Shown here: positions 6,508-42,500 of the stretch, in pieces
Layout: every line of letters starts with the position of its first letter
Position numbering within the stretch: position 1 is the stretch's first letter
Program-made: the position numbers and the translations under genes
The notes under the pieces: generated by a model
Database searches by the model: none
What the model was told of the DNA's origin: nothing
What the model saw: the letters and a program-made list of their open reading frames with translations, nothing else
From: Sphyrna mokarran
Lineage: Eukaryota
Length of the DNA stretch: 64,000 nt
Reading direction: 5' to 3'
Assembly (NCBI GenBank): GCA_024679065.1
Contig: JAGIQG010000004.1
Location: forward strand, 63,240,001 to 63,304,000

Positions 6508-7213
6508 TGTTGATGAACAGAGGGATTTTGGTGTATATGTTAATAGATCCCTGAAAGTTGGCAATCAAGTCGATAAGATTGTTAAGAAGGCATATGGAGT
6601 CTTAGCTTTTATTGGTAGGGGGATTGAATTTCGGAGCCGCAACGTCATGTTGCAACTGTACAAAACTCTAGTGCGGCCGCACTTGGAGTATTGTGTGCAG
6701 TTCTGGTCCCCACATTATAAGAAAGATGTGGAGGCATTGGAGAGGGTACAGAGGAGGTTTACCAGGATGTTGCCTGGTATGGAGGGCAGGTCTTATGAGG
6801 AGAGGCTGATGGGTTTGAGGTTGTTTTCGTTAGAAAGAAGGCGGCTAAGAGGAGACCTTATTGAAACATATAAGATGATTAGAGGTTTAGATAGGGTGGA
6901 CAGTGATAGCCTTTTTCCTAGGATGGAGAAAGTTAGCACGAGGGGACATAGCTTTAAATTAAGGGGTGGTAGTTATAGGACGGATGTCAGAGGTAGGTTC
7001 TTTACCCAGAGGGTGGTAAGGGTATGGAATGCCCTGCCTGCTTCAGTTGTAGATGCGCCAAGTTTGGTGGCGTTTAAGAGGTTAGTAGATAAGTTTATGG
7101 ACGAAAAGGGAATGGTTTAGGTTAGAGGGTCATTGCTTTTTCCTAATTGGTCGGCGCAACATTGAAGGCCGAAGGGCCTGTCCTGCGCTGTAATGTTCTA
7201 TGTTCTATGTTCT
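6508..7213 (+). mobile_element. Young CR1 3' fragment
   Basis: ORF 6647-7120; (GTTCTAT)n tail; inserted within a minus-strand tRNA-SINE relic (~6440-7390). Confidence 0.95.
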
Positions 7214-7944
7214 AAAGGGAAACCAGATGGGTACTTATGACAGTGATTCATGATTATCATTAGAATTTTAATTCTTGGTGTTAATTTAATTCAAATTTCA
7301 CGATCTGTTGTGGTGGTGATGCGAACTCAAGTCCACCAGATCTCTGGATGGCTAGTCAAATGACAATACAACGATGTCATCCCTACCCCGTGTAGGGGTG
7401 CTGACTGGATCATTGAGTTCCAAAATATCAGGGTTGCTGCCAAAATTGCCTTGCCTGCTGACCAAAGTCCTGATCTCACTGACCGATACATTCCAGCAAA
7501 TGTCCACTGCAGTAAAATGGTTTTCAACTTGTTTGGCATTGCAAGTGTGCACGAGTATTTGCAGATGCCATCATACAACTTGAAAGGCAACTGAACAGTT
7601 CAAAAATAGGTAGGTATAAGAGCAAATCAGTGAGCATTCTGGAATCTGAAACAAAAACAGAAAATATTGGAAATCTCAGCAGATCTAGCAGCACCTGTGG
7701 AGGGAGAAGAGAGCCCAATATTTTGCATCAAGACATCTCCCACTACAGCTACAGATAATAGAAAATATGGTGATATTTATACCGTTAAAATGAGGAGAGG
7801 GGTAATTTATAATAATGTCATAGTCAAAAAGATAAAAGAATGCAGATGGTATAATAAATACTGAGAATGTTATTGATAATGGGCCATTAAGAGATAAGAA
7901 TATATAAATGGCAGAACAAAGTTAAGCAGGGTGTGTGAGAGAAT

Positions 7945-11803: not shown

Positions 11804-11858
11804 ATGTTGGCTAGTGTGACAATTCCGTGCATTACTGTTCTCGGAATCATTTTTACAG
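11804..11858 (+). CDS. Gene A exon 1, signal peptide [18 protein letters not shown](G)
   Basis: ATG at 11804, hydrophobic 18 codons + 1 nt, donor CAG|GTATCT; resembles gene B leader (CITVLGI vs CIWVLGI). Confidence 0.8.
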
Positions 11859-14800
11859 GTATCTGCTCCTATTACGCTTTGTTTTCTCATTCAATCGCGT
11901 AGTTATGTATCTTCGTTTTGGTGCAGCATGTTTCATTGTCCTTTACAAATATTATCTGAATCCCTTTCCTCCCTCTCTCCCTCCTGTAATATGATATCAT
12001 TATTACATTTTTACATTTTTCCCCATAGGTCCCGGTGGAACTTCAGTAAGAGTCACTCAGCTCCCTGAGAGAATAAACGCAAACATCGGTACAAACGTTT
12101 CCTTTCATTGTTCGCTTCCTTTCTTTCAAGACGGCCCACGTGTGAATGTAAACTGGTGGAAAAATGGTGATTATCAATATCTAACGTCCGGACAAAATGA
12201 TAGAATAATAACTGGATTCAAGACTAAATTCAGCGGCTTCCTTCGGATAATTAATGTGAATGTGCAGGACACAGGAGTATACTATTGCATTGTCACGCAT
12301 CAAGGCAAAACAGCTGGAAATGGAACTGGATCTAATTTAACAGTATGGAGTAAGTATAAAAAATGTAAATAAGATCCATCTGACTACAAATTTCAAACTT
12401 CAAAACATAAATTTTGATTTTAAAAATTCAACTTTTCAATTAATTTCAACGATCAGTGTGTGTACATTCCAATTATACTGGTGATTGCTGTATGCTGATG
12501 TATGCTGCAATATTTCAAAAATAATGATAAAGAGAACATTGTCTTCTAAATGTGTGATACCAACGTGTATTCAACAAACAATTGAAGTTGAAATTTCGAT
12601 ATTGGATAAGTTGGGTACCTCGGCATTAAGAGACAGTGTTGAGGATCTGATAAAGAGAACGCACTAATCCTATTTCATGGTGTAATTCGCCTACGTTGAT
12701 TGCGAAGGGCTGTATGCCTCTATTCGGGCCAGCTGTTTCAATTGTTGATGGTCTATTTTTTAAGTTCATATTTCTAACGGTTGAATTACACAATGACTAA
12801 TTTGAACAAAACCATCCTCATCTTTCACCCATCATTTTAGCCTCCAGCAAGCGTGAATCATCCGGGTCTTTGGTGCAAAATCTAACTAATTTAATAAATT
12901 AAACTTCCCACATAGCTTTTAGATTCGATGGGGTGAAATTCACCCTAGCGGAATCGCAAAATATGAGAACATCCCAAATTACATAGCGAGCAATGCGCTT
13001 CCGAATTAGAATAGAAGATTGGACGAGATTTTTTATTGGATACGAACTCGCTTTCACTCGCATGTTTTTTTTTGTCCCCATAAAAACAGTTTAAATTATA
13101 AGCAAAATAAACGCCACACGCGAGACTGTCGTCTGACTGAATTGTCACTACAGATAATGCAATCTAAATAACTATCCTTCCATTGCTCCACGCCAGGTTT
13201 ACGGCCAACAGTGGATTGGGACACATAGTTTAGCTGGTCATCGAGATTAATGGCATTAACTTAAACGAGTTGGTTACAACTCTGTTCCCTGAGCCAGGAG
13301 GATTTTGGTTCAAATCCACCGACCACCCCCTTCCGCCGCCAGGTATGAGTAAAAATCTCAACTCTGACACCCCAGTGCAACACTCCAGCGTTCTGCACTG
13401 CCACAGGGGCAATTATTTGGATAAGTCATTAAGCCTGCTGCTAAATGGATGCCGACGATCCCATGTCTCGATTTTGAAGCGCAGGGAAGTTATCCACGGT
13501 TATCCCCGAGTTGTCTTACGTGTCCAGGCCAATATTTCTCCTTCATCAACATTACGCAAAAGATGAACTGATTGTGATCACGTTTGATTTAACTTGATGT
13601 GTTATTGTCACAATTACTAGCATACATGAAAAGTATTATTTCTTGCGTGCACGCTGCAGTTTCTGGAAATTTCTTGTTCATAGATTTGCTGCCAATTGTT
13701 CATCGTTACAACAGTGACAGCATTTCAGTTGTTCTGCATTGATTGCTGGGCGTTTGAGACGTCCTCTTGTGCGAAACGCGTTACCTAACTACCAGTCTTT
13801 ATATTCTTTATTGTTCTAGCCCCACCAACCCCATTGAAAATTTACCCTCAGCAACTTGAAACGGATCCTGCTGCACCGCTGGTTGTTCTGTGCACCACAT
13901 CTCCTTTTTATCTAAAGAATATCAGTTTCACTTGGTATAAGGATGGCATTATAACTAAAATAGGGATCAATACCATCATTAAACCCAACACCAATGGACT
14001 CTACGAAGCTTCCAGCCAGTTGCAAGAGGCGCAGCCTTCCCGGCCCGGAACTGTTTATACTTGCCTGGTCTTTCACAGTGCGCTCCAAATTCCAGCCATA
14101 ACCACTCACATTGTCACCTACCCAAACACAGGTAAGATTTCTGATATAATCATATAAATTTACAGTTTTGGAAAACGTTATTTCACTCAGCCTTTCGGTG
14201 CAGCCTTTTTGAAAGAACTGTCAGATCCATTCCGCCGGCAGCAGCATTACTCCCACAACCGGCAAATCAGCATCATTAACCCTTTATCCAATTGCCTTTT
14301 GCAAATAGCTACATAAATTATTTCCAGAAAATTTTCAGGCAGCACGTTCTATATCTTCACAATTTCCAGTTAGAAAATAATTCTCCCCACAGCCCCTTTA
14401 TTATTTGCCAATGGTTTTCGATTCAGAAGTATTCATGAGACCCACTTTTTGTAGAACACGTTTTCCCCAATAATAAAATACAGTTGTCATAATTTTGCAA
14501 AATTTCCGTTAGATCTCACCTTAATATTTTCCTACTCTGTTGAAAAGAATCATAGTTTCAAATCTCGCCACGTAGCCGAAGGCCCATTGTCGTTGTTAAA
14601 CCTAGAAAACATCCTTTGCTATTCTCTCTGAGATATTGGCATTATTCCTAATATGAATTGTACACTATACATCTGTATGACTTCCATGTATCCAATGGTT
14701 CTTTCGCACGGCTAATCATCCGAAAAGTTTCACTGATCAACATTTCAACTTCCCAAACACCATTTGAAGATTTATAGATATCTCAGAATTTAAATTACAT

Positions 14801-17800
14801 GAGAGTATCTACGTTGATTTCAGTAAAATGCACACTTCATAATTATTTGCATTAAATTGCACTTGTCAGTTGTGATCACTTTTCCTGTTCCATGGAGTGC
14901 TAAAGTCGTCTGCAGTCGTCATAACAGTGACCAGTGTTGCAGGATTTATAATCTTCAAATTGTACTCCCATATCGTATAAAGAAATAGTCCTAATGTTGA
15001 ACAAAGATTCAGTCAAAAACAACAGTTTACCATTGTTCTCTATATCTATAATTTAGCCAATAATGCATCTAAAGGACCACCATTCATCAAATCCCAAGTG
15101 TTTATTTAAACATAACAAAGCCACCCTTCGACATTTTTATTTTGGTTCATAATATTTATTTTCTTATTCATTCACAGGATGTAGATGTCACTGGCTAGAC
15201 CAGCATTTATTGTCCATCCTAATTAGCCTTGAGAAGGTAGCCGTGAGCTGCCTTCTTGATTCACGGCAGTCTTTGTGCTGTAGGACCGTTAGGGAGTCCC
15301 TGGATTTTGATCCGGTGACGGTGAGCAAACGGCGATATAATTCTAAGTTAGGATGGTGTGCACAAATGGTCTTGCATCTGTTGCCTTTACAGTTATGGAG
15401 GTAGACATCAGTGAGTTTGAAAGGTGCTGCGAAAGTGAGTTTTTTCAGTGCATCTTGTAAATGTACCACCATTGCTGCAACCAGTCATGACCCCTGTTGG
15501 GGTTCTTTGAGAAAGTAAGAAGCATTGTTGATAGGGAGGAATCTATGGATGTGTTGTACTTAGATTTCCAAAGGCATTTAACAAAATGCCATGGTAAAGA
15601 CCCCTATCAAAATAAGATTCATAGTGTAGGGGGTAACATGTTCGCATGAATACAAGATTGACTATCTAACAAGAAGCAGACAGTAAGCATAAATTGATCG
15701 TTTTTGGGTTGGCAAAATGTGAAAAGTAGACTGTCAAAGGGATTAGTATTTGTATCTCATCTATTCCCAATTTTTTATCAATAACTTGGATTAAGGGACT
15801 AAATACACAGTTGTGAAATTTGCTAACGCCACAAAGATTGATGTGGGTAGATTCTTTATAGGAAAGTGAATCAGATAAATGGGAATGTCGGTTTCAAAAC
15901 ACAAACAGGTCAACCAGAATCAAATTACAGAGCAGGTTCGAGGGGGCAAATGGCCCATGTCTGCTTCTTTTTCGTATGTTCGTAGCAATATGTAGACACC
16001 TGTATCTTAATACAAATGTTCGGAAAAACTAAATATTTGCTTTGTTTCAGAGGTCGATTATATTGAATTGAATAGTGTACTCTTTTTATTTATACAAGTC
16101 ATTTAATTCTTACAGGACATCAGAGCAGCAATTTATTGATTTTTGCATTGACAAAAGGCGGGTTCCTTCTCCTGATGTTGGGTCTCATTATTGTGACGCA
16201 TTACGTCACAAAGAAAGATAATGGTAAGAAAATTAAAATCCTTTTCACTCAAGTAAGCACAACTTTTAAAGAGGGAAGGAGAGCGAGGGGAAAAGTCCTG
16301 TTACAGGTGAAGAGAAAGTTGTTTGCAATTGAACAATGCAAACAATATCCTGTCACAGAGAAGCAGAGGTGATTGCTAATTCTAGCCACTTGTGGTATGC
16401 ACTTGTGGTATATGTGGTATACGTGCAATTTCTCACAATCATTCCTGTTGGCTTCATTTATAAAGATCAAGCTATGGAAGTCGATGATCCCCAAAGGCAT
16501 ATACGCAAATACATAGCAAAAATCTCGCACAAAATACCCTGGGTACAACAACAGGCATAAGGCCATATTTTAGGGACATTTGACTGGTGTGACGCACAGC
16601 TACAGGCTCAAGAGACTATTTAAAAAGTGCCCTGAAAATCGATGATTGTCAACTTTCAAAGTTCTACAAACATGTCTAACCCAACACTAGACACTTGAGT
16701 CTCACGTAAAACCACATCCTAAGAAAATTCAATCTAATGCTATGAAATACATTTTTTCAAATTACTTTGTTTTAGTTCATTTAGACACGAAAAATTCCCA
16801 ACATTGAAGCAAAATGTGGGTCGCAAAGTATTCACGCAGTACGGTGGCACTGTGGTTAGTCCCTCATAACGCCAGGGACCTGGGTTCAATTTCACGCCTT
16901 GAGTCATTGTCTGTTGGAGTTTGCGCATTCCTCCATGCCTGTGCGGGTTTCCGCCGGGTGCTCCGGTTTCCCATCACAATCCAAAGATGTGCAGGTCAAA
17001 GATTGACCCTGCTAAATTAATCTTAGCGTCATGGGGATTAGCAGGGTAAACATGTGGGGTTACGAGAATGAGGCCTGGAAGGAATTGTGTTCGGTGCAGA
17101 CTTGACGGGCTGAATGGCCTTCTTCTGAACTGTAGGGATTCTATAGATTTCAACTCTGATTTTGTTAATATGGTATTTTAAAGCATTATCGGTGTAGCAA
17201 TAGATTTGATTTTCTTTCTATTTTGGTTGGAATTTTCTAAATTCGAGAGTCAATCACTTAGCCAGTGTTTTTATTGCAAAATCTGCTTTTGTTGCCTGCA
17301 TAATTTAATAACGTAATACTTTTATGTTATTAAAATCACTGAGCGTAAAATCATTTATTCTGCCCATGCGATTTCCAAAGTAGTTTCTTGCGCAAGGCCG
17401 GTATCAGAACAACTCACTTAGAAATCATGGAATCCTACAGTGTAGAAAGAGGCCATTCGGCCCATCGATTCCGCACCAACCACAATCCCACCCAGGCTCT
17501 ATCCCCATATCCCCACATATTTATCTATTAATCTATGCACCACAGAGCACTAAGGGCAATTTAGAATGACCAATCAAACTAGCCCGCACATCTTTGGATT
17601 GTTGGAGGAAACCAGAACACATCCACGCAGATATAGGAAGAATGTGCAAACTCCACACAGTGACATCAGCCGGAATTCGAACACAACTCCCTGGAGCTGT
17701 GAAGCAGTAGTGCTCACCACTGTACTACCATGCCGTCTTTCCTTTTGTCAAACCTGGTTGGAAACCAAACCTGTTATTTTATCTTTTGCACTGAGTCTGC

Positions 17801-20800
17801 AAGAAGTTTATTTTTAGGCTCAGTAAGTGCTCATTGTGAAGTCTTCAATAATTCCTAGGTATGCACAAGGATGGTGGAAGATGTCATTATCCGGAACAGC
17901 AGGTATGTTTCTATAATTCGTTCTAATACATCGCAAATGTTAATATATACAAGTGATGTAATCAATTTATGGCAATAAATGTTGATGCCTTATTCCATTG
18001 CTGCACAAATTCGTTTGAAGTAACGCAATGCGAATTCTGCATTTATATCATTTCCAATAAATCAGAGAGGCCTGAATTGTCTATCTGAATTGTAACTGTA
18101 TCTGCCTGAATTGTAACTGTATCTGCTGGCTGAGAATAAGCATATTGCATAAAACTGAACATCCATTTTAATGAATAGGTTAAAAAAATCTACTTTATCT
18201 GTCTGTACACAGTGGACAATATGATGAGGGCTGTAGAACATCCATTAACAAATTGAAAACTGCCACATGATTTCATCTGACAGTGATATATTGAATTCAG
18301 TTTTCATAAATGTATCTCATCAAAATACAAAAGCTGCAAGAATATCCTTTAAGTTGTGTTCCCTCAAGAACCAATTGGTTCATTAAAGTCTGACAACAAA
18401 GCATATCTATCATTTTTGAATGATAGCCGTCCACACTGTATTGGTTAACTCTTAACTCCCTTCTGAAATTTCCAGATATGCCCATCGCGAATTTCTCAAC
18501 TCATCCAAGTTTAGGTAATCAAACCTGGTCCAATCAGCAGATCCAGTAATTGAGAGTTAGTTGAAAATGCTGTCAAAGTTGTCAGTTTTTCTTTAATGTT
18601 CCCATGCGTGCAGAGGCATTACAATTGAAACTTGGGATCAATTTGCCACAATGAGAATAACCACAAGGATGCAGGTACCAGGTAATTGGCATTCGCTCCC
18701 ATTGCCTTATCCAACCATCAAATAATCAACTAAATTTGGAACATCCCAACAAATACAAAGGAAGAGCATTATTTAAATAGCGATATATTGGGAATTGATG
18801 ATGGACAAAAGGATTTGAGTGTCATTGTACATTAGTCAATGAAAGTTCAGAGACAGCTGAAGCAAGCAGTTAGGAAGGCAAATAAACTTTATTGCAAGAG
18901 GACTTGAGTTCTAAAGTATGGATGTCTTGCTCAATTATAAGGTGCCTTGTTAAGACCACACCTGAGTATTGTGTATAGATTTGTTCTCCCCACCTAAGAA
19001 AGGCTATATATGCTATAGAGGGACTGCAGCAGAACTTCTGAAGTGGATATCAGGTTGGGTAGGTTTGTCATGTCAGGAGAGATGGAGAAATTGGAAGGAT
19101 AAGAAGAAATCTGATTAAAATATATAAAATTCTGAATAAACTGGGCAAATATTTTGTTTCCTATCTGCTGACGAGCTTTCTATCCATCTTAAAACATTAT
19201 CAATAATCTTATTTGTTTTAACATTACACAGTAGTTTACTATGTAAAAACTTGTGGAAAGCCTTCTGAACGTCTAAATAAGTCACATTCACCAGTTTTCC
19301 TTGGTCAACTCTGTTAGTTACATCCTCAAAAATTCGAATAGATCTATCAGGAATTATTTCTTCTTCGCCTGATTATGCCACTGCTTTCCAAATGCTCAAC
19401 TATAAAATCAAATTCAAGCAACTTCACCAATACTGCCATTAGGCTGACTGCTCTATAGTTCGCCGTTTGCTCTCCTCCTCTTTTTTTGAAGAGACACAAT
19501 TTCCAGGGCCACTTTGTCAGTAGTCTGGAGTGAAAATTATTATGAATCCAGGAGATTTAGCCAGCTTCAATCCCATCAATTTTCCCAAAACCATTTTTCT
19601 ACTAACACTGATTTCCTTCCGTGTCTCATGAAAACCTGTTTTTTCTCAGGACTTCTAATATATTATTTATATCTTCCTTTGTGAAGGCAGAAGCAAAGTA
19701 TGAGTTTAGTTCCTCAGCCAGTTCTTTGTTCCCTGTCATGAATTCTCCCATTTCTGGCTATAAGAAGCCTACATTCGTTTTCCGATTTTTTTCTCTCTTT
19801 CCATACCAATAGAAACATTTGCAGTCAGTTTTTATGATCCCTGCTAATTTATTTTCATTGTTTATGTTCCCCTTCTTAACTAATGCATTGGTCTTCCTTT
19901 ACTGAAAATTAAACAGTTCCCAATATTCAGGTCTATTGCTTTTTAATAGAACATAGAACATAGAACAATACAGCACAGAACAGGCCCTTCGGCCTTCGAT
20001 GTTGTGCCGACCAAAATAAAAAAGCAATGCCCCTCCAAACTAAACCATTCCCTTCTCTTCCATATACTTATCAATTAACCTCTTAAACGCCACCAAACTT
20101 GGCGCATCTACACAGCTGCAGGCAGGGCATTCCACTCCCTAATCACTCTTTGAGTAAAGAACCTACCTCTGATATCCGTCCTATAACTCATACCCCCTAA
20201 TTTAAAGTTGTGTCCCCTCGTGCTAGCTTTTTCCATCCTAGGAAAAAGGCTATCACTGTCACCCTATCCAAACCTCTAATTATCTTATATGTTTCAATAA
20301 GATCCCCCCTTAGCCGCCTCCTTTCTAACGAAAACAACCTCAAATCCTTCAACCTCTCTTCATAGGACCTGCCCTCCATACCAGGCAACAACCTAGTAAA
20401 CCTCCTCTGTACCCTCTCCAATGCCTCCACATCTTTCTTATAATGTGGCGACCAGAACTGCACACAATACTCCAAGGGCGGCCGCACTAGAGTTTTGTAC
20501 AGTTGCAACATGATGCTGCGGCTCCTAAATTCAATCCCCCTACCAATAAAAGCTAAGACTCCATAAGCCTTCTTAACAAATTTATCCACTTGACTGCCTA
20601 CTTTCAGGGATCTATTGACACATACACCAAGATCCTTCTGTTCCTCAACACTATTAAGAGCCCTACATTAGCCCTATACTCTACACATTCATTGTTCCTG
20701 CCAAAGTGCATTACCTCACACTTTTCCACATTAAACTCCATTTGCCACCTCTCGGCCCAGCTCTGCAACTTGTCCAAGTCACTCTGTAAACTAAAACACC

Positions 20801-23800
20801 CCTCTTAACTATCTACCACACCACCAACTTTAGTATCATCTGCAAATTTACTGATCCATCCCTCAATACCCTCATCCAGATCATTTATAAAAATTACAAA
20901 CAGCAGGGGCCCCAAAACAGACCCCGGAGGCACACCACTCGTCACCGAACTCCACGATGAATATCTCCCATCAACCACCACCCTCTGTCTGCTATCTGCC
21001 AGCCAATTTCTAATCCAATTAGCTAAATCACCCTCTATTCCACACATCTGCATTTTCTGTAGAAGTCTTCCATGGGCCACCTTATCAAAAGCCTTACTAA
21101 AGTCCATATATACTACATCAACCGCCTTACCCCCATCCACCTCTCTGGTCAATTTCTGCCAATTTATATGCTTCTTCATTGAATCTTATGCAATTTCCAA
21201 TTTCCCGCGTAGGTTATGATTTGGCCACAGTTCCATTACCAATTATGGAATAACAGGAATAAGCACCTTAAATGCCTACCATTGCTTGTCCAGTTATTCC
21301 TTTTCAATAATACCCCCCGATCCATTATCACCAATTCATGTCTTATACCATTTTTGTTATCTTTATTGGGATTTAGGACCCTGGTCTCCGAATCAATCAT
21401 GTCACTATCCATCTTGGCAAAGGTGGTATGTTATGATCACATCCCGATGGACTTGTTCACTGCTAGATTGCAAATGAATCCTTTCTCATAACAATACACT
21501 GTCCAAGGTGGCCTATTCCTCGTTGATTGCTCAACATATTAGTCCAGAAAACCATACTGTATAGACTTCAGAATTTCCTCCTCTATTTTACTGTGATTAA
21601 TCTGATTCTTCTAATCTATATGTAGATAAAGTCACTCTTCATCACAGACGTTTATTAACACATGCACATCTGATTTCCTGTCTAATGCTACTCCCAACAT
21701 TGTCACTACAGTTTGATGTTCTGTAAACCACATCCACAAAAGTTTTTTTCTTTCCCCCTTCGTGTTTCTTATCACAGCTCGTACGGATTGCACATTGTCG
21801 ATGCCAATAATATTTTTCCTCAATATCCTATCAATGTTTTCTTTGATCAACAATACAACTATCTTTTGCGACTGTCCTTCTTAAAGACTGAATAACCTTC
21901 AATGTTTAGTGACAATCCTTTGTCAACTTTGAACCATGTCTCTGTCATTCCAACTATATCATTTCCGTTTACATCCATCTGTGTTTCTAAATCATCCATT
22001 TTGTTTTGAATGCTCTGAACGTTAGGTGTGTCCATTTAAAAGTATTTGCCCATTCCTATAACTATTTTTACCATATTCATATCTGACTCTGGTCTTTGTT
22101 TTCTCTGCTATCACTTTTCTTATTCTATTTGCAGTCTTTTTCACTTGAACTTGCTTCTCCCTGTTTTGAATCCTCACTTACATTCCCATCCCCCAGTCAC
22201 TTCCCAATCATTGTAGCAAGAAGCAGCTGCCTCCTCCCCCACCCCGCCCCCCCCCACCCCGCCCCATCATCCCCGCCCCTCCTAAGGAAACGATCTCTGG
22301 TCCTGCTCAGAACTCATCTCTCCATCCCAATGCCTCAGGAATCTGAAACCCTCCCCCTCACACCATATTTTTAGCCATATATTCATCTGGCTGCTGCCAC
22401 TCTGGCACCAGTTGTAATCTTGCAATAACTACCTTTGGGGTTCTACTTTTCAGCTTGTTTCTTAGCTCCCTATATTCTGCTTAAGGGACCCTTTTTTGTC
22501 ATTGTGATTTGTTCCAATGTGGACCACGATCACTGGCTGTTCAGCCTTGATCACCTTGAATAATGGAGTAGACTCAATGGACCACTTGTCCTACTGTTGC
22601 TCTGTTTCTGCTTTTTATTATTATTCAATCGTGGGACATAGGCATAGCTGGCTAGCCAGCATATATTGCACATTCCTACTTGTCCTCGCTCAGAGGGCAG
22701 TTGAGATTCAACCACATTGCCTGTGGCTCTGGAGTCACCTGAAGGCCAGACCAGATAAGGACGGCAGATTTCTTTTCGAAACGACATTAGTCAATCAGAT
22801 GGGTTTTTCTGACAATTGACAACGGTTTCTCGGTATTTAGTAGATTCTTATTTGCACATTTTTACTGAATTCAAATTTCACCACCTGCTGTGGCGGGTTT
22901 TGATCCCAAAACATTAGCTGTGTTTCTGGGTTAGTAATCTAGCCATAACACCATTAGTCCATCACCTGCCTCCCCCCCCCCCCCCCCCCCCCCCCCCCGC
23001 CTTTTTTTTTGTATTTGTCTTCAACTTTATTGCATTAATGGGGCCAGCGAGTCTAATCAAATATTGAGAAAGCTGCTGGAACTGAGGGTATTATGCCCAC
23101 TGTATTTCCCCTTTTTATATATAATGAATGGACAGAAATATGTTGCCATTTAGTCCATTTTTGTGATACATACTGCATGCTCCATCAAATTACTCGTACA
23201 GGCAAGGAAGCAACATTTCAGGATATCACCCAGTCAGTAGCTGAATATACTAATGATTTTTCTGTGATAGATTTTCACACTTGCTTTACATTTGTATTTC
23301 TAATTCCATTTCTTCTTCCTGCTTAATTCATCAGAGTCCAGCTTGGTGCAAAGCGATGGAAATATCTGTAGATAGAAAAGTTACATAATTAGAGAATTAT
23401 TATTATAGATGTTGATGTGGATATTGTGATATTGTGGATGAAGTAAAATATCAAAGTAAGACTTTATATTTAGTCTGGAATTTCTCTGTCTTGTTGCAAT
23501 ATAGACTGTTTTGTCCCGCATTATGACCATTAATTTCTATTTGTGGTTTGTCAGAATATTAGAAATGACCTGATTGCTGGCCATGGTCCTTTCTCTCAGG
23601 CTATGTTAATTCAATTCCTGCCAGGTGATAATTGCTGCAGAAATTTTCTAATTATGCTTAAAGTTGAATTTCATAAAATAATATCAGTAGATTACTTATT
23701 TTTGCTGTAACGTCTGTATGAATTCAACTGTGGCTTCCATCAATGGAATACAGGGAGCAACTGTGACTCCTCATTTGTTCCTTTATTTCCCTCATCATGA

Positions 23801-26682
23801 GATTTCTCAGGATTCCATTAATCTTAACAGAATACTCGGAGAAATCCCAGAGCACTGAATGAATGAATATCTTCAACCATTTATGCTGTTTCTCTTGGGA
23901 TAGTTCTAGCCACGCAGACAAGTTTAGTCTGGAACAAGTCGTATGTTTGTGGAATTGTGCAGACAGATTTCTGTGTTTTCCTGATGCCTGATCATTAAAC
24001 AATGTTTGAGCAGAGCACCCAAATGGAAATCCGGTGAGTGGAATATTGCCATCACATTTCAATATTAGGAAATTGCGGCAAATTTTGTTCTCAGCAGTGC
24101 CTCTACCAGATTTTCCATTCGGTACTCAATGCTGACAATGTTGACAATGCTTGAAGCCCAGATGGTAAATCTCTGAAACTCTGATCACCCTCATACAAAC
24201 GATATATTTTAAGTAATAAGACTGTTAGAAACCAGGGCAGAAACTCCAAGGTATATTGTGAATTTAGTGTAGACCGAAAATGTTTGTGATTTTGCAATAG
24301 TGGGAATACAAAGTGTTCCACTCCAGGTGTGATAACTTTTATGAAAACAAACTTTATTTAACAATTAGTTAAAATATGACAAAAAGAATTAACATAACTT
24401 TTACTGGTTGAAATACTTAAAGATGATAAAATATAAATCTTAAGTTTTTTTATTACTTCCAATTTTAGCAACAATCACAAAGATGTATATTTCCTTCAGA
24501 ATCAGTTAGCAACGCACAGTGCCTTAAATGAATTCTTAGTGCTCCAGCTTTTTAATCCCTCTGGTCAAAGTTATGGAGAGAGATACTCATCTTTGATTTT
24601 CAGGTAGCAGCCTCCATAGAGGAAATCTGTCTTCACACACAGAACTTCAATGAGAGAGAGTGAGAAAACACCTCTTGCCTATTTCAGAATTCTGGAGATA
24701 GATACTTCCAATTTCTGAAAACGGAAGAGGGCAAAAGAGCAACTCTTTTCTATTAGAAAGAGCAACTCTATTCTATTAGAATAGAATAAAAATGCATATC
24801 CCGACCCGGAGACGTGTTTTGCTGACATTCAAACGCTTGTTATGGTGCGGTTAGCCACTGCTGTTCGTTGAGAAACACAGCAGCCAATCCGTTCAGAGCA
24901 AGATCCTACGAATATCGATGTAAACTGCAACTGCCTTCTTTATCCTCTTTCTAAGCCTTGCCCTATCCACTCCACTTTTCATTTAATGTAATATTACTCT
25001 GAAACCACAGGTAACACATCAAAGAATATCAACAATAGCATTAGCCTAGATTAAAACAAGTGCTTCAATGGTTAGAGGAGCAATTAACCTTATGTAGTAT
25101 CAGCAAGTGGGCTGTGAATTGTGACTGGTTGGCATCGTAATTAGAGTTGAAGCATAAGATAGTCCCTTCAGAAGAAATATGACTCAAATACATTTCTTAA
25201 AGGCACAGTATCATCACAAGACTCCGTCCACCCTCTTTGCGCTGGTGCTGGAGGGATGGGACTCTGCCAGAATGCAATGGACAGTTGTGATTTCATTTAA
25301 TTCTGGGGCTGCAAATTATGGGCTTATTCATATCAGTCTGTAGACGGAGTGGATAACAAGTGTTTTTTTTTTAATTGACTTTCAGTTCATTCAAGGAACT
25401 GTCGAATTGTTGCCACCTTATTCTGCACCAGATACGACCGAATCCTAAACAAAAACCTCCAAGACATCAAGAACAGACACCATGCATCCAGGTAGGATCG
25501 AGCAAAGATGCGGAATGCGTAATTAACAAGTTGTGTATGGGAAAATACATTTAATACGGCTTTGCTACTTCTGTCTGCGTTAGCGCTAATTCTGCGACAT
25601 TCTTCCGGTATTATGTCAGTTAAAATTCCGTTTGGCTTCAGAGTCGAAAGATTGTAGGATATAGCCCACTCAGGAAACTTGAGAGTAAAGTATAATTTGG
25701 CACTCTTGTGCATTACTAGGGGAAGTCTGCATTATCTGAAGTGCCGTATTTCAAAGGAGACGTTAGACTGAGGCTCTAGTATTCTAGATTTGCAGCAGAT
25801 TAGGCCTATTACTCCCTTCAGTTCAGAAGAATGAGATGGGGATCTTAATGAGATGTAAAAGTTGTTAAAGGAGATCGGTAAGGTGAAGTCAATGTCCGCC
25901 AATGTAGAACAAGACGTCATAGTTTGAGGGTAATGGATAGCAGATTGAAAATAGAGACCAGGAGAAATTACGGGAGTCTGTAAAATTCATCTCTCAAGAT
26001 TTTAATGAGATGCTGGGACATTGACTAAATTAAAGGAAGAAGTGAAGTGGTTTTTAAATCGTAATAGTTTGAAGGGTCATGGTGAACAGACAGGAAAATA
26101 AAGTTTGAGGCCGAGATAAGAGCAGCCATGACCATATTAAAGGTGGAGCAGGCTCGAGGGCCTGAATTGCGTACCCCTGCTCTTAGTTCTTATGATTCTT
26201 ATGTATGATTCATATGATTCAATGGCATTATTTCGAAGAAGAGCAGGGATGTTATCCCCTGTGTCTCAGTCAATGCCTTTGGTCCCCATTACGAAAACAA
26301 ATTGTTAAGAGTACATCGATATTCGTAGGATCTTGCTCTGAACGGATTGGCTGCTGTGTTTCTCAACGAACAACAGTGGCTAACCGCACCATAACAAGCG
26401 TTTGAATGTCAGCAAAACACGTCTCCGGGTCGGGATATGCATTTTTATTCTATTCTAATGAGTTACAATAAAGTAAAATTGGAACTAATTATATTCCCAA
26501 TCATTGATTTCACAGACAAGCAAGGATTACCCGATAATAAGCTGACGTATGCTGCTCTAGATGTGGTAGGGTCAAAGAAAACTTCACAGCCAAATCATAA
26601 TGATAAAAGCACGGAATATGCTCAGCTAAAGATGGAAAAACAAAGAGCAGGAGTTATCTGCACCGAACCGAAAATCACGTGA
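11804..26682 (+). CDS. Gene A: multi-exon IgSF receptor, leader-V(J)-C1-TM-cytoplasmic ITIM (SIRP-like / non-rearranging antigen-receptor-like). Minimal model join(11804..11858,12029..12349,13820..14131,16116..16223,26516..26682), 320 aa
   Basis: Five exons with GT-AG boundaries and phase-1 junctions; 55+321+312+108+167=963 nt, open to TGA at 26680-26682; domain motifs given in the exon entries. Extra small cytoplasmic exons may exist. Confidence 0.85.
12029..12349 (+). CDS. Gene A exon 2, VJ-type Ig V-set domain
   Basis: Acceptor ttttccccatag, donor A|GTAAGT; [45 protein letters not shown] shows the B-strand Cys, C-strand Trp, DxGxYYC and a J-like GxGxxLxV in one exon. Confidence 0.93.
13270..13795 (+). 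mobile_element. Old tRNA-headed Deu-type (SacSINE/AmnSINE-like) SINE in gene A intron 2
   Basis: GGTTCAAATCC B-box, GTCCAGGCCAATATTTCTCCTTCATCAAC core; paralog at 44775-45185. Confidence 0.6.
13820..14131 (+). CDS. Gene A exon 3, Ig C1-set domain
   Basis: Acceptor ttgttctag, donor G|GTAAGA; [46 protein letters not shown] matches the C1 signature (C..FY..I..TW, NG.Y...S.L, YTC.V.H). Confidence 0.92.
15490..15985 (+). mobile_element. Old CR1 relic
   Basis: GATGTGTTGTACTTAGATTTCCAAAGGCATTTAACAAA (D.VYLDF..F.K) and a degenerate 3' hairpin. Confidence 0.6.
16116..16223 (+). CDS. Gene A exon 4, stalk + transmembrane helix with Lys
   Basis: Acceptor ttcttacag, donor G|GTAAGA, phase 1-1; [36 protein letters not shown]; Lys codon 16154-16156; KK after the helix. 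Confidence 0.85.
16836..17145 (+). mobile_element. HE1-like V-SINE
   Basis: tRNA-like head ACGGTGGCACTGTGGTTAG..GGGTTCAATT, V-domain, CR1-like tail GGGCTGAATGGCC..GATTCTAT. Confidence 0.9.
17419..17737 (-). mobile_element. HE1-like V-SINE
   Basis: Reverse complement of head, V-domain and tail. Confidence 0.88.
17859..17902 (+). CDS. Candidate small cytoplasmic exon of gene A ((G)[14 protein letters not shown])
   Basis: attcctag acceptor, CAG|GTATGT donor, open from phase 1; ends in phase 0, so it needs a partner exon or an alternative acceptor downstream. Confidence 0.45.
18740..22330. mobile_element. Old CR1 relics (+ strand 18740-19140; - strand 19150-22330, split by a young CR1)
   Basis: Degenerate RT and endonuclease fragments. 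Confidence 0.6.
19946..21152 (-). mobile_element. Young CR1, 5'-truncated
   Basis: [33 protein letters not shown]; C-terminus; (GTTCTAT)n tail. Confidence 0.95.
22630..22972 (-). mobile_element. tRNA-derived SINE (related copies ~6440-7390 -, 36240-36410 -, 54095-54420 +)
   Basis: Minus-strand head GGGAGGCAGGTGATGGACTAATGG; shared core GGGCAGTTGAGATTCAACCACATTGC..GGAGTCAC..AGGCCAGACCAG; adjoining poly-C tract 22972-23000. Confidence 0.7.
25432..25491 (+). CDS. Candidate small cytoplasmic exon of gene A ([20 protein letters not shown])
   Basis: cttattctgcaccag acceptor, CAG|GTAGGA donor, 60 nt, open in phase 0-0. Confidence 0.35.
25700..26205 (+). mobile_element. Old CR1 3' end
   Basis: AGAAGAATGAGATGGGGATCTTAATGAGATGTAAAAG; 3' GGCTCGAGGGCCTGAATTG..TTCTTATG tail. 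Confidence 0.65.
26516..26682 (+). CDS. Gene A terminal exon with ITIM (LTYAAL) and ITIM/ITSM-like motif (TEYAQL)
   Basis: Acceptor gatttcacag; [55 protein letters not shown]; motifs at 26542-26559 and 26611-26628, tyrosines 23 aa apart. Confidence 0.82.
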
Positions 26683-29780: not shown

Positions 29781-30371
29781 ATAGACATAGAACATAGAAC
29801 ATTACAGCACAGAACAGGCCCTTCGGCCTTCGATGTTGCGCCGACCAATATAAAAAGCAATGCCCCTCCAAACTAAACCATTCCCTTCTCTTCCATATAC
29901 TTATCAACTAACCTCTTAAACGCCACCAAACTTGGCGCATCTACAACTGCTGCAGGCAGGGCATTCCACTCCCGAACCACCCTTTGGGTAAAGAACCTAC
30001 CTCTGATATCCGTCCTATAACTATCACCCCTTAATTTAAAGCTGTGTCCCCTCGTGCTAGCTTTTTCCATCCTAGGAAAAAGGCTATCACTGTCCACCCT
30101 ATCTAAACCTCTAATCATCTTATATGTTTCGATCAGGTCCCCTCTTAGCCTCCTCCTTTCTAACGAAAACAACCTCAAATCCCTCAGCCTCTCCTCATAA
30201 GACCTGCCCTCCATACCAGGCAACATCCTGGTAAACCTCCTCTGTACCCTCTCCAATGCCTCCACATCTTTCTTATAATGTGGGGACCAGAACTGCACAC
30301 AATACTCCAAGTGCGGCCGCACTAGAGTTTTGTACAGTTGCAACATGACGAAACTCTAGTGCGGCCGCACT
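29781..30371 (-). mobile_element. Young CR1 3' fragment with a short 5' inversion, nested in an old + strand CR1 (~29090-30900)
   Basis: ORF 29873-30346; 30351-30371 is the reverse complement of 30310-30330. Confidence 0.93.
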
Positions 30372-33778: not shown

Positions 33779-35243
33779 GTTGTATAAAACGTTGGTTAGA
33801 CCTCATTTGGAATACTGCGTCCAGTTCTGGTCGCCTTACTACCGGAAGGACGTGGAGACTCTGGAGAGAGTGCAGAGGAGGTTTAGCAGGAAGCTGCCTG
33901 GTATGGAAGGTCTGAGTTACGAGGAGAGGTTAGGCAAATTGGGACTGTTTTCGTTAGAAAGACGTAGACTTAGAGGAGATCTAATTGAGGTGTACAAGAT
34001 TATGAGGGGTATAGATAGACTAAACAGGGTTAAGCTTTTCCTTGGATGGACTCGAATAGCACGAGGGGTCACGGGCTTAGGGTGAGGGGGGTAAGGTATA
34101 ATGTGGATGCGAGAGGGAGTTTTTCACATAGAAGGTGGTGGGAGTATGGAATGCGCTACCAGGTAAAGTACTGGAGGCAGGCACTCTGGAGTTATTTAAG
34201 AAATTAGGCAGACAATTGGATGAATAAACTGGAAGAAGGTGTTCTTGGGGAAAAGTACAGAAGGAAAGTGGTGGATATTCAAGGAATGTTTGTCTGGGGC
34301 TCTGCAAGATAACGTTCCGAGGAGACACGGAGGCTTTGGTAAGACACGGGAACAGTGGTGCACGAAGGTAATGGTGAACCTAGTCAGGAAGAAAAGAAAG
34401 GTGTATAAAGGGTTCAGAGAGCTAGGAGATGTTAGGGATCTAGAGGAGTATAAGATCTGTAGAAGGGAGCTTAAAAAGGAAATTAGAAGAGCCAGAAGGG
34501 GTCATGAGAAGGCCTTGGCGGATAAGATTAAGGAGAATCCCAAGGCCTTCTACAAATATGTGAAGAGTAAAAGGATGAGAAGAGAAGGGATAGGACCTAT
34601 AAAAGGTGAAGGGGGAAAAGTCTGTCTGAATCCGGAAGAAATGGCAGAGGTGCTTAACGAGTACTTTGCTTCAGTATTCATGGTGGGAAGTGATCTGGGA
34701 GGTTGTACTGCAGGTTTGAGGCAAACAGAAAACATTGAGTATGTGGATGTTAGGAAAGAGGGTGTGTTAGATCTGTTAAGTTCTATCAAGATAGACAAGT
34801 CTCTGGGACCAGATGGGAGGTACCCCAGGTTATTGTGGGAAGTGAGGGAAGTGATTTCAGAGCCCCTGGCGATGATCTTTGCATCCTCCATGGAAACGGG
34901 AGAGGTTGCGGAGGATTGGAGGATTGTGGATGTGGTTCCTATTTTTAAGAAAGGGAACAAGGATAGTCCAGGAAATTATCGACCGGTGAGTTTGACCTCA
35001 GTGGTTGGTAAGCTGATGGAGAGGCTTCTGAGGGACAAGATTTGTGAACATTTGGAGAAGTTTAGAATGATCAGAAATAGTGAGCATGGTTTTGACAAGG
35101 GCAGGTTGTGCCTTACGAGCCTAGATGAGTGCTTCAAAAATGTGACTGAACACATTGACGAAGGAAGAGCGGTGGACGTGGTGTACATGGACTTCAGCAA
35201 GGCATTTGATAAGGTCCCCCATGCAAGGCATTTTGAGAAGGTG
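33779..35243 (+). mobile_element. Compound CR1: 3' part of one subfamily (33779-34203) fused to the EN-RT region of another (34203-35243)
   Basis: ORFs 33780-34085 and 34239-35273 ([31 protein letters not shown]). Confidence 0.9.
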
Positions 35244-35408
35244 AGACAACAAGGTGGACCAAAGCACCTGTAGGATAAAAACAAGTACATTAATATCATC
35301 GCCTATTTACACACTTCCCAGGGATTCCCAAGGCTCATAATCCCTATTTTAAATCAGTTTTCTATATCTCTCCATTCCCATTCTGTTTATGTGCCCATCT
35401 AAGTATGT

Positions 35409-38882: not shown

Positions 38883-38928
38883 ATGTTTGAAAGTCAGTGC
38901 ATATGGGTCCTGGGAATTACTTATGAAG
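38883..38928 (+). CDS. Gene B exon 1, leader MFESQCIWVLGITYE
   Basis: ATG 38883, 15 codons + 1 nt, donor AAG|GTATTT, similar to gene A leader, in phase with the V exon. Confidence 0.72.
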
Positions 38929-39149: not shown

Positions 39150-39461
39150 TTGTTTCCACCTGGGTGTCGCAATCGCCTGAAAGCACCGTCGTGATGGCAG
39201 GTTCAGACATTACACTCTATTGTACAGCGAATGTTGTCCAGATTCACTCAGATGTGGATGTTTATTGGTGGAAACTTGGCGATGAAACCTTTTTACAACC
39301 GAAATCTAATGGCAGAAAACGATTCCTTCCTTTTAAAAGCGGAGCGACTTCCTTCCAGATTCTGAATGTTCGTGTCTCCGACTCCGGATTCTATTACTGC
39401 GGAGTGCGAGACAAAGGCAGCAGGATCCTCAACGGAACTGGATCCAAACTTGTTGTGCACG
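39150..39461 (+). CDS. Gene B exon 2, intact VJ-type Ig V-set domain
   Basis: Acceptor ttttacag, donor G|GTAAGA; WVSQSP..GSDITLYC..VYWWKLGD..FQILNVRVSDSGFYYC..ILNGTGSKLVVH; aligns without gaps to gene A V (~35/101 identical by hand). Confidence 0.92.
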
Positions 39462-39550: not shown

Positions 39551-42500
39551 ATAGAACATAGAACATAGAACATTACAGCACAGAACAGGCCCTTCGGCCT
39601 TCGATGTTGCGCCGACCAAAATAAAAAGCAATGCCCCTCCAAACTAAACCATTCCCTTCTCTTCCATATACTTATCAATTAACCTCTTAAACGCCACCCA
39701 ACTTGGCGCATCTACGACAGCTGCAGGCAGGGCATTCCATTCCCTAATCACTCTTTGAGTAAAGAACCTACCTCTGATATCCGTCCTATAACTCATACCC
39801 CTTAATTTAAAGCTGTGTCCCCTCGTGCTAGCTTTCTCCATCCTAGAAAAAGGCTATCACTGTCCACCCTATCTAAACCTCTAATCATCTTATATGCTTC
39901 AATAAGATCCCCTCTTAGCCGCCTCCTTTCTAACGAAAACAACCTCAAATCCTTCAAACTCTCTTCATAGGACCTGCCCTCCATACCATGCAACATCCTG
40001 GTAAACCTCCTCTGTACCCTCTCCAATGCCTCCACATCTTTCTTATCATGTGGCGACCAGAACTGCACACAATACTCCAAGTGCGGCCGCACTAGAGTTT
40101 TGTACAGTTGCAACATGATGCTGCTGCTCCTAAATTCAATCCCCCTACCAATAAAAGCTAAGACTCCATATGCCTTCTTAACAACTTTATCCACTTGGCT
40201 GCCTACTTTCAGGAATCTATTGACACATACACCAAGATCCTTCTGTTCCTCAACACTATTAAGAGCCCTACCATTAGCCCTATACTCTACACATTTATTG
40301 TTCCTGCCAAAGTGCATTACCTCACACTTTCCACATTAAACTCCATTTGCCACCTCTCGGCCCAGCTCTGCAACTTGTCCAAGTCTCTCTGCAAACTATA
40401 ACACCCCTCTTCACTATATACCACTCCACCGACTTTAGTGTCATCTGCAAATTTACTAATCCATCCTTCATACCCTCATCCAGATCATTTATAAAAATTA
40501 CAAACAGCAGGGGCCCCAAAACAGACCCCTGAGGTACACCACTTGTCACCAAACTCCACGATGAATATCTCTCATCAACCACCACCCTCTGTCTTCTATC
40601 TGCTAGCCAATTCCTAACCCAATTAGCTAAATCACCCTCTATCCCATACATCTGCATTTCTGCAGAAGTCTTCCATGGCCACCTTATCAAACGCCTTACT
40701 AAAGTCCATATATACCACATCAACCGCCTTACCCCCATCCACCTCTTTGGTCACTTTTTCAAAAAACTCGATGAGGTTAGTAAGGCACGACCTACCCTTC
40801 ACAAAACCATTCTGACCATCCCCAATCAATTCATTTCTCTCTAAATAACTATAAATCCTATCCCTAATAATTCTCTCCAATACTTTGCCCACAACAGAAG
40901 TAAGACTCACTGGCCTATAATTCCCTGAAGGTCTCTCTTCCCCTTCTTGAACAATGGGACCACATTCGCTATCCTCCAGTCCTCCGGAACCACACCCGTA
41001 ACCAACGACGACCTGAAGATCAGAGCCAGAGGCTCTGCAATCTCCTCTCTTGCCTCCCAGAGAATCCTAGGGTAAATCCCGTCCGGCCCAGGGGAATTAT
41101 CCAACTTCAAACCCTCGAGAATTTCTAACACATCCTCCCTATCTACTACAATACTTCCCAATTTGCAACCCTGTACCTCAGTGCTCTCCATAGCTACATT
41201 TCCAGCACTCTGCGTGAATACTGAAGAGAAATATTTATTCAGTGCCTCACCAATCTCTTCAGGCTCCACACACAACTTCCCCCTGCTGTCTATGACTGGC
41301 CCTAATCTTGCCCTAACCAATCTTCTATTCTTAACATATCGAAAGAAAGCTTTAGTATTCTCCTTAATCCTATCAGCCAACATCTTCTCGTGTCCCCTCT
41401 TAGCTCTCCTCAATTCACTTTTTAGCTCCTTCCTGGCTAATCTATAGCTATCCATTGCACTAACCGAGCCTTCAAGCCTCATCCTGACATAAGCCTCCTT
41501 TTTCCTTTTAACCAGCAAATCAACTTTTTTCGTACACCAAGGTTCTCTTACTCGACCATTTCCTCCTTGCCTGACGGGGACATACTTATCAAGGACTCGC
41601 AGCAGCTGCTCCTTGAATAAGCTCCACATTCCAGATGTTCCCAGTCCCCGTAGTTTCCTAGTCCAATCTATGCACCCTAATTCTCTCCTGATGGCCTCAT
41701 AATTACCCTTCCCCCAGCTATAACTACTGCCCCCAGCTTCATGCCTATCCCTATCCATCACTAAGGTGGACGTAACCGAATTGTGGTCACTATCACCAAA
41801 ATGTTCACTAACTTCCAAGCCTAACACCTGGTCTGGCTCATTGCCCAGCACCAAATCCAATGTAGCCTCACCTCTAGTTGGCCTATCTACATACTTAGTC
41901 AAAAAACCTTCCTGCACACTCTGTACGAAAACTGACCCCTCTAACGAGCTAGAGCTATAGCTATTCCAATCAATATTAGCAAAGTTAAAGTCCCCCATCA
42001 CAATTACCCTACTACTTTCACTCCTAATCAGAATTGACTTTTCAATCCTTTCCTCAACCTCTCTAGAACTATTAGGAGGTCTGTAAAAGACTCCCAACAG
42101 GGTGACCTCTCCTCTCCTGTTTCTCATCTCAGCCCATACTACCTCAACAGACAAGTCCTCATCAAACTTCCTTTCTGTCACTGTGATACAGTCTTTGACT
42201 AATAATGCCACTCCTCCCCCCCCCTTCTACCTCCTTCTCTACTCCGACTAAAGCATTTGAACCCTGGAACCTGCAACATCCATTCTTGTCCCTGCTCTAC
42301 CCAAGTCTCTGAAATGGCCACAACATCGAAGTTCCAGGTACTGGTCCAAGCTGCAAGTTCCTCCCCCTTATTGCGAATACTCCTTGCATTAAAGTATACG
42401 CATTTCAAACCACGCCCCACCCCACCCGTACGCCGCTGTGTTTTACAACTCTCTTCTATAACCCCCTTACTCTCATCCCTCTCAGCACCCCAACTACTTA

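Follow-up and report, generated by a model that had tools for sequence, protein, structure and literature searches.

A predicted germline-joined V(J)-C1 receptor gene of Sphyrna mokarran belongs to an unstudied family of cartilaginous-fish membrane proteins

A 64-kb stretch of the Sphyrna mokarran genome (assembly GCA_024679065.1, contig JAGIQG010000004.1, positions 63,240,001 to 63,304,000 of the forward strand; hereafter the window) carries a gene, here called gene A, that is predicted to encode a germline-joined, non-rearranging V(J)-C1 type I membrane receptor. The family to which it belongs is known already as RefSeq predictions, and gene A is a slightly damaged member of this unstudied family. 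Across cartilaginous fishes, the family appears from its sequences to behave like paired inhibitory and activating receptors. We give about an even chance to the reading that gene A descends from the inhibitory type and now shows two features typical of activating members, a charged transmembrane (TM) segment and no translated immunoreceptor tyrosine-based inhibitory motif (ITIM), while the inhibitory exon lies unbroken downstream.

Gene structure and ectodomain

Five exons, for a leader, a V domain, a C1-set domain, a TM segment and a cytoplasmic tail, form the chain that defines gene A (Table 1). Each has AG/GT boundaries, all junctions are in phase 1, and the chain adds up to 320 codons (18+1+106+1+103+1+35+1+54). 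This total is arithmetic; the exons were searched, modelled and scripted one by one and never joined into one sequence. The leader is 72% identical over 18 residues to that of the Scyliorhinus relative P0004, and the V exon is 78% identical to the same protein. The V exon keeps the canonical C27, W42, Y84 and C86 and scores 34.5 bits against the Pfam V-set model (cut-off 26; 2.5e-8), with comparable scores for Ig_3 (37.5) and I-set (32.5). Its AlphaFold2 model, built on the family alignment, has a predicted local distance difference test score (pLDDT) of 90.5. The model lacks a C'' strand, with merely a two-residue strand between C and D, and in this it resembles the V domain of IgNAR and I-set domains. 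The G strand is split at G98-T-G100, which in the model is the bulge expected of a J-like strand. The J-like motif, N97-G-T-G-S-N-L-T-V105, lies wholly inside the V exon; the residue before its G-x-G bulge is the Asn of an N-x-T sequon, where the J segments of immunoglobulins (Ig) and T cell receptors (TCR) have Phe or Trp.

The C1 exon scores 33.9 bits against the Pfam C1-set model (cut-off 21; 4.2e-8), and its AlphaFold2 model, again on the family alignment, has a pLDDT of 88.9. It is 90% identical to the closest relative, P0001 of Mustelus (93/103), 72% to Scyliorhinus P0004 and 59% to Heterodontus P0152. No second C1 exon was found between the V and TM exons, and no cysteine was seen in the stalk in the sequence read. 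A scan of the window for heptamer-spacer-nonamer sites resembling recombination signal sequences (RSS) returned one weak site, at 54232, far from both V exons of the window; shuffles averaged 0.92 sites. The original prediction, made from the letters alone, had claimed this five-exon chain, a V exon already containing the J-like strand, a single C1-set exon, and the absence of RSS and separate J segments, and on all of these points the analysis agrees with it.

Upstream of the leader by 4.2 kb, at 7561-7611, lie 17 codons that are 94% identical to the N-terminus of P0001 (XP_078068150.1). In the Mustelus model these 17 codons run on into the beginning of the V exon, and most of the V domain is left out. 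Either the stretch is an alternative first exon or the Mustelus model is flawed here.

A family confined to cartilaginous fishes among named matches

When the C1 exon was scored against 1.84 billion representative proteins, 271 matched at E <= 1e-3 and 87 at E <= 1e-10, the best being XP_078068150.1 of Mustelus asterias (P0001) at 90% identity. Typical matches, of 250-400 residues, have a leader, a V domain with the J-like motif near residue 115, a C1 domain near residue 200, a TM segment and a tail. The named relatives were chondrichthyan in every set that was looked up: 46/46, 13/13, 10/10 mid-ranking matches, and a further 10/10 (one of them a long multi-C1 protein). They come from sharks (Mustelus, Scyliorhinus, Heterodontus, Heptranchias, Cetorhinus, Hemiscyllium and Chiloscyllium), from rays and skates (Amblyraja, Mobula, Hemitrygon, Pristis, Narcine and Hypanus) and from the chimaera Callorhinchus. 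No non-chondrichthyan orthologue was found among the named matches, nor did any search return a protein from the window's own genome. With Mustelus asterias nearest and every named relative chondrichthyan, the attribution of the gene to a cartilaginous-fish family holds. Most of the weaker multi-domain matches that were looked up were other proteins, of bony-fish, frog, lizard or lungfish origin; the chondrichthyan ones numbered two, a 980-aa Heptranchias protein and P0143, a Mustelus protein of V-C1-C1 layout.

P0143 and a second protein among the weaker matches, P0103 (Logan), have V-C1-C1(-C1) layouts and a C-G-C-G or G-C-G J-like motif, and they look like relatives of UrIg and UrIg2. In Mustelus, P0143 lies on another contig (103.5 Mb) than the family (152.9 Mb).

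Pfam recognizes a C1-set domain in 45/46 of the named relatives and a V-set domain in 41/46. RefSeq names for the family include SHPS-1-like (that is, SIRPα-like), SIRPβ1-like, tapasin-related-like, Ig lambda-1-like, CD276 homolog, NCR3 ligand 1-like and class II beta-like of the major histocompatibility complex (MHC). At least seven unrelated names are thus in use for one family, differing even within a single 90% cluster, and the naming pipeline evidently found no clear orthologue. Listed members of a species appear to share one contig (8/8 in Heptranchias, 16/16 in Heterodontus, 5/5 with a contig given in Callorhinchus, 4/4 in Mustelus), which suggests one chromosomal cluster per species. 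Exon by exon, gene A is about 69-94% identical to Mustelus proteins and 72-78% to Scyliorhinus; judged on alignments of this kind, its similarities to RefSeq proteins at 80-94% identity cannot be spurious. All four of the family's exons from the TM segment onward (TM, two cytoplasmic exons termed cyt1 and cyt2, and tail) are present in its DNA, with the frame damaged. A within-family tree of the C1 domain (64 chosen rows, 103 columns, many forks unresolved) pairs gene A with Mustelus P0001 at an SH-like approximate likelihood ratio test (SH-aLRT) support of 99, inside a clade of shark and ray members.

The J-like strand is itself a mark of the family, as is the PPTPLKI that opens its C1 domain. 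In 88 proteins of <=520 aa that match Y-x-C...G-x-G-[TS]-x-L-x-V, the residue before G-x-G is Asn in 72, mostly as N-G-T-G-S, and the NGTGSNLTV of gene A fits the family motif N-G-[TSN]-G-[ST]-x-L-x-V. In profile alignments the family Asn faces the F of FGTG in the lambda chain and the S of SGAG in SIRPα. A glycosylation sequon therefore sits at the aromatic position of the rearranging receptors, and we infer that its presence there would argue against V-V pairing of the Ig or TCR kind.

Whether the family had been described before was a question that the original prediction had left to a search. Novelty stands in part: no paper was found on a chondrichthyan V-C1 family of ITIM or SIRP-like type (supplements were not covered, and subscription papers may bear on novelty), and close relatives are already predicted in RefSeq. 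A literature search for PRARP returned only unrelated uses of the acronym. Subscription papers on PRARP or on a 2019 'primordial immune complex' reportedly exist that may bear on the family's novelty.

Paired inhibitory and activating forms

Of 87 family proteins with both motifs, 59 gave a confident TM call. Ten of these have Lys or Arg in the TM core, and none of the ten has an ITIM-like tail; such a tail is present in 32 of the 49 with a neutral TM segment (Fisher p = 1.3e-4, with kinship left uncorrected). The median tail is 23 aa long with a charged and 100 aa with a neutral TM segment. Where a protein has two or more tyrosine motifs, two of them are exactly 23 residues apart in 11 of 19 cases, as in gene A. 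On the C1 tree the nine charged-TM rows need eight changes of state, and switches of TM charge therefore recur.

This pattern suggests that the family behaves like paired inhibitory and activating receptors, following the logic of SIRPα and SIRPβ. According to one account, SIRPα is the inhibitory partner and SIRPβ the activating partner with a charged TM segment (PMC12975943). By analogy with SIRPα, the neutral-TM members, with their ITIM-like motifs and motifs resembling the immunoreceptor tyrosine-based switch motif (ITSM) on a tail of about 100 residues, would recruit SH2 phosphatases and inhibit the cell. The minority with Lys or Arg in the TM segment and a short tail would, like SIRPβ, couple to an ITAM-bearing adaptor (immunoreceptor tyrosine-based activation motif) and activate it.

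Cytoplasmic exons and the fate of gene A

The original prediction had called gene A intact. This description fits the ectodomain and the TM segment; the tail is another matter, since two conserved exons had been missed there, inside the supposed 10-kb intron between the TM and tail exons, and the frame is damaged by changes that include an in-frame TAA. The first of these exons, cyt1, was found by tblastn with P0001 (residues 181-195, 87% identity). The second, cyt2, matches Mustelus P0001 in frame at 80% over its first 20 codons, and the remainder matches relatives only in the +1 frame, which points to one extra base near 25440. The in-frame TAA that follows, at 25446-25448, lies 43 nt before the end of the exon and hence before the last junction. 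The tail exon is 80% identical to the P0001 tail (43/54) and holds an ITIM-like LTYAAL (26542-26559) and an ITSM-like TEYAQL (26611-26628), 23 residues apart. Read in the phase 0 of the family, however, it gives nine codons and then a TGA at 26543-26545.

The phase used by the family follows from its gene models. In Heterodontus P0201 (374 aa), cyt1 is followed by a 39-codon cyt2 and this by T-K-Q-R; in Heterodontus P0202 (335 aa), and likewise in Scyliorhinus P0006, cyt1 is joined directly to T-K-Q-R. P0201 and P0202 are near-identical outside the cyt2 stretch, yet carry different RefSeq names. From these comparisons, cyt2 is a symmetric phase 0-0 cassette and the tail exon starts on a whole codon. 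The tail exon of gene A is one base short of this phase. Because of that missing base and the cyt2 stop, both usual splice forms stop before the tyrosine motifs. The motifs stay in frame only if cyt1 and cyt2 are both skipped, and the 320-aa open reading frame (ORF) owes its continuity solely to the base that the tail exon lacks.

The TM segment has changed as well. Where gene A has its lysine, Mustelus P0001 and the Heterodontus relatives have an uncharged Gly, and the change from Gly to Lys needs two base changes. The TM exon is the most diverged of the exons shared with P0001 (24/35 identical, 69%, vs 80-90% for the others), and several of its substitutions cluster around the lysine. P0001, the Mustelus counterpart of gene A, has a neutral TM segment and an in-frame tail and is of the ordinary inhibitory type.

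According to the reading that we hold to be about evenly balanced between true and false, gene A would derive from the inhibitory type, to which its closest relative in Mustelus still belongs, and would then have gained the TM lysine and the extra base in cyt2 and lost a base where the tail exon begins. Spliced as is usual in the family, with the cassette in or out, it would make a V-C1-TM(K) protein whose short tail has no ITIM; such a derivative would be of activating type or dead in signalling. The splicing that is used, like the ligand and the cell type in which the receptor would be expressed, is something that we infer. Several points weigh against such a derivation. The lysine lies three residues deeper in the membrane segment than the Lys or Arg of other charged-TM members. 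A kinship-aware pair test of TM charge against tail was not significant (6 pairs, median p 0.25), although 0 of the 6 pairs went the wrong way. The splice forms of gene A are drawn from relatives' gene models and not from transcripts, and both one-base changes are drawn from protein alignments and could be assembly errors. Finally, an open 54-codon tail exon with 80% identity to Mustelus and both motifs fits continued use as well as it fits recent loss.

Continued use of the tail could take the form of splicing that skips both cyt1 and cyt2, giving a 320-aa receptor with the TM lysine and an ITIM/ITSM tail that could signal both ways. All five exons are in frame in this model, the open tail exon keeps the identity to Mustelus and the family's 23-residue spacing, and the base missing from it is exactly what puts TM-to-tail splicing in frame. 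Yet an in-frame outcome has a one-in-three chance to begin with, cyt1 and cyt2 retain AG/GT boundaries and a good polypyrimidine tract, relatives' models use both exons, and none of the ten charged-TM family members has an ITIM-like tail. We regard such a dual receptor as unlikely, though worth keeping in view. It is also possible, if slightly harder to credit, that gene A has recently become a pseudogene within a cluster in decay, its loss beginning with the frame damage in the cytoplasmic exons, and that it makes no functional protein. The two frame-disrupting changes agree with this, as do the dead neighbors (an A-type C1 exon with stops and an inserted long interspersed nuclear element (LINE), a gene B without C1 of its own, and a V fragment) and a window full of LINE copies. 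Against decay, no stop interrupts the leader, V, C1 or TM exon, and canonical Cys and Trp residues and splice sites are kept. Moreover, by the 50-55-nt rule of nonsense-mediated decay, an mRNA with the cyt2 stop so near the last junction would escape degradation, and truncated-tail isoforms occur in relatives (P0205).

There is only a slim chance that both one-base changes are assembly errors and that gene A is an ordinary inhibitory member. One of the changes sits in a short A run where the tail exon begins, and the Mustelus counterpart is of just that ordinary type. Two independent errors would be required, however, and the extra base in cyt2 lies outside any homopolymer. The charged TM segment would also be left to explain, as Gly to Lys takes two base changes in a segment with several other substitutions.

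Relation to SIRP, antigen-receptor and other families

The family resembles the SIRPs in its non-rearranging V domain, a J-like strand without the aromatic residue, a C1-set domain, a TM segment and a tail with tyrosine motifs. It is like them, too, in having inhibitory and charged-TM activating forms, as PMC12975943 presents the SIRP pairs. Many chondrichthyan members are named SHPS-1-like by RefSeq. SIRPs are V-C1-C1, whereas gene A and most of its relatives have one C1 domain. As for the TM segment and tail of the SIRP types, gene A has the TM lysine, and its ITIM/ITSM-like motifs are in the DNA and out of frame under the family's splicing. A search with a tail alone (P0019 residues 262-377) recovered only the query itself among 25 candidates and is uninformative either way; the four-tyrosine tail presumably resembles that of SIRPα.

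Searches of the PDB place the family near SIRP without singling SIRP out. With the family profile, the lambda chain scored 74.5 bits over V and C, SIRPα 69.4 over its first two domains and 49.8 over its third, and the domains of UrIg2 58.8, 30.3 and 39.3. Among 177,635 distinct sequences, SIRPα took third place and SIRPγ eighth, ranks to which a second C1 domain contributed in both. With the C1 exon of gene A alone, SIRP was not in the best 60 matches; UrIg2 came out best (E = 2.6e-11), with a score to which three weak domain matches of 10.9-17.4 bits add up. MHC class II beta domains and lambda constant domains came next, at about 29 bits, the best single-domain matches. The SIRP-like label of the original prediction thus holds insofar as RefSeq often calls the family SIRPα-like, and falls short in the single C1 domain and in a lambda chain that scores about as well as SIRPα. 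Gene A would work like a SIRP-type paired receptor in a single-C1 variant; its membership in the SIRP family is unproven.

Fold comparisons gave no single nearest family for the C1 domain. All 50 Foldseek matches listed for the C1 model are MHC class II chains, 49 beta and one alpha, with TMq values of about 0.8, whereas the VIA Z values tie within about 1 (MHC class II beta 14.2; UrIg2, IgNAR C3 and CL 13.7; SIRPγ domain 2 13.0). For the V model, the fold search returned NCAM domain 1, TCR V alpha, IgNAR V, CD79b and SIRPα domain 1 at similar E values. The MHC class II beta-2 domain is the closest solved fold to the C1 model in the Foldseek search and one source of the 29-bit sequence matches, and RefSeq names some family members after class II beta or tapasin. 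The likeness is confined to the C1 fold; gene A has neither a peptide-binding domain nor the N-terminal domain of tapasin.

Ig light chains and TCR chains have the colinear V-C1 ectodomain in common with gene A, and light chains align over the whole V+C1 span of the family profile. They differ from gene A in what it does not have: RSS, a separate J segment, a C'' strand (in the V model) and a stalk cysteine. They differ also at the J position, where the Phe or Trp of their J segments is replaced in the family by an Asn with a glycosylation sequon. We rejected the possibility that gene A is a rearranging receptor chain, given that its V domain and J-like strand share one exon, that no RSS accompanies them and that [F/W]-G-x-G is absent.

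Among non-rearranging genes of elasmobranchs, UrIg and UrIg2 keep VJ in a single exon, have their leader split and carry C1-type domains; UrIg is secreted with three C domains, nurse shark UrIg2 has nine, and both are single genes, not clusters (PMC12227049). Gene A shares with them (UrIg2 is PDB 9dmx) the single-exon VJ, the split leader, a C1-type domain and an elasmobranch host. It differs in having one C1 domain, a TM segment and ITIM-type exons. Gene A was rejected as a UrIg or UrIg2 on its one C1 domain, against three or more, and on the weak scores per domain.

The NITRs of teleosts are, by two accounts, a clustered family of non-rearranging V genes with VJ continuity, mostly inhibitory through ITIMs and with an activating minority (PMC2442602, PMC7916673). 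The gene A family is alike in its clustering, its VJ continuity, and its inhibitory majority and activating minority. NITRs have been described from bony fishes and have one or two Ig domains, whereas gene A is from a cartilaginous fish and has a C1-set second domain. The second domain of NITRs is not known to be C1-set. No sequence link between gene A and NITRs was seen in any search run, and gene A was rejected as a teleost NITR on its C1-set second domain and its cartilaginous-fish host.

Significance

Non-rearranging genes with a VJ exon and a C1 domain have been sought as relics of the gene that was split by the RAG transposon, as two sources describe (PMC12227049, PMC10751288). The shark candidates in print, UrIg and UrIg2, are each a single gene that encodes several C domains; here there is a whole family with the minimal V(J)-C1-TM layout. 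The original prediction had gone further and proposed that gene A is of the pre-RAG ancestral type. This was not borne out, as the resemblance is architectural only and the aromatic J residue is replaced by Asn in 72 of the 88 proteins counted; any link of the family to antigen-receptor ancestry is speculative.

A bolder reading, which we think unlikely, is that the family may preserve, in membrane-bound and non-rearranging form, the kind of V(J)-C1-TM chain that gave rise both to the SIRPs and to the rearranging chains, and that gene A may be a snapshot of a switch from inhibitory to activating. The ancestral part is suggested by the layout of TCR and light chains, by a lambda chain that scored as high as SIRPα and by a C1 domain nearest to that of MHC class II beta-2. 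If true, gene A would be a rare snapshot indeed, in which a TM lysine has been gained and two one-base changes have shifted the tail out of frame, with the ITIM/ITSM exon unbroken. The family could tell whether paired receptors of the SIRP type date to the base of the jawed vertebrates, how such receptors switch sign, and whether the family itself is linked to the MHC or to regions paralogous to it. Gene A alone is of more modest interest, being one member with an inhibitory tail that is probably disabled, and the family deserves more attention than it does.

Neighboring copies and window content

The window contains one usable gene and the remnants of two or three others. Gene B, downstream of gene A, has an intact leader exon that matches Mustelus P0181 and an open V exon that is 85% identical to P0181 and 38% to the V exon of gene A. 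P0181 is a charged-TM, short-tail member. C1, TM and tail exons belonging to gene B were not found in the 64-kb window. Further along lies a dead C1 exon, split by a LINE insertion exactly between the codons for G59 and L60; ORFs resembling reverse transcriptase are present at the inserted element (45758-46801 and 46866-47336). This exon is 63% identical to the C1 exon of gene A and 68% to P0001, and its alignments with the C1 domain of P0181 are insignificant (about 26%, E = 19; 33%, E = 0.96). For these reasons it is taken as the remnant of a further A-type copy, and its assignment to gene B was rejected. A 15-residue V fragment of B type, 87% identical to P0181 residues 60-74 (E = 0.003), has no recognizable V sequence on either side.

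The original prediction had counted at least three copies in a birth-and-death cluster. Gene A and the V exon of gene B bear out two of them; the rest comes down to the dead C1 exon and the V fragment, so that a third copy is not identifiable beyond remnants. The position of gene A among decayed copies fits a birth-and-death cluster.

Table 1. Coordinates of gene A, its neighbors and remnants in the 64-kb window
Feature	Position	Strand	Remarks
Gene A leader exon	11804-11858	+	ATG at 11804; 18 codons + 1 base; ends phase 1
Gene A V exon	12029-12349	+	V domain and J-like G strand in one exon
Gene A J-like motif	12319-12345	+	N97-G-T-G-S-N-L-T-V105, inside V exon
Gene A C1-set exon	13820-14131	+	Starts PPTPLKI; YTCLVFH motif
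Gene A TM exon	16116-16223	+	AAA (Lys) codon 16154-16156 within hydrophobic stretch
Gene A cyt1 exon	17859-17902	+	44 nt; phase 1 to 0; ag acceptor; donor gtatgt
Gene A cyt2 exon	25386-25491	+	106 nt; long pyrimidine tract; donor gtagga; found by tblastn with family proteins
Gene A tail exon	26516-26682	+	54-codon frame in phase 1; stop 26680-26682
Gene B leader exon	38883-38928	+	Intact; matches Mustelus P0181
Gene B V exon	39150-39461	+	Open ORF; both splice sites; J-like NGTGSKLVV
Dead C1 exon, 5' half	45225-45395	+	Gene A lineage; two in-frame stops
LINE (reverse-transcriptase) insertion	45396-47195	+	Splits dead C1 between G59 and L60 codons
Dead C1 exon, 3' half	47196-47334	+	Second Cys replaced; stop and frame damage
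B-type V fragment	60141-60185	+	15 residues

No other genes were found in the window, the remainder of which is LINE debris. A young LINE family makes up much of it, including part of the long intron of gene A at 20197-21179. Near-identical ORFs of 157 codons occur on both strands (2422-2895 on the minus strand, 6647-7120 on the plus strand, 29873-30346 on the minus strand, and others), and further reverse-transcriptase ORFs lie at 34239-35273, 40907-42211 and 62091-63032.

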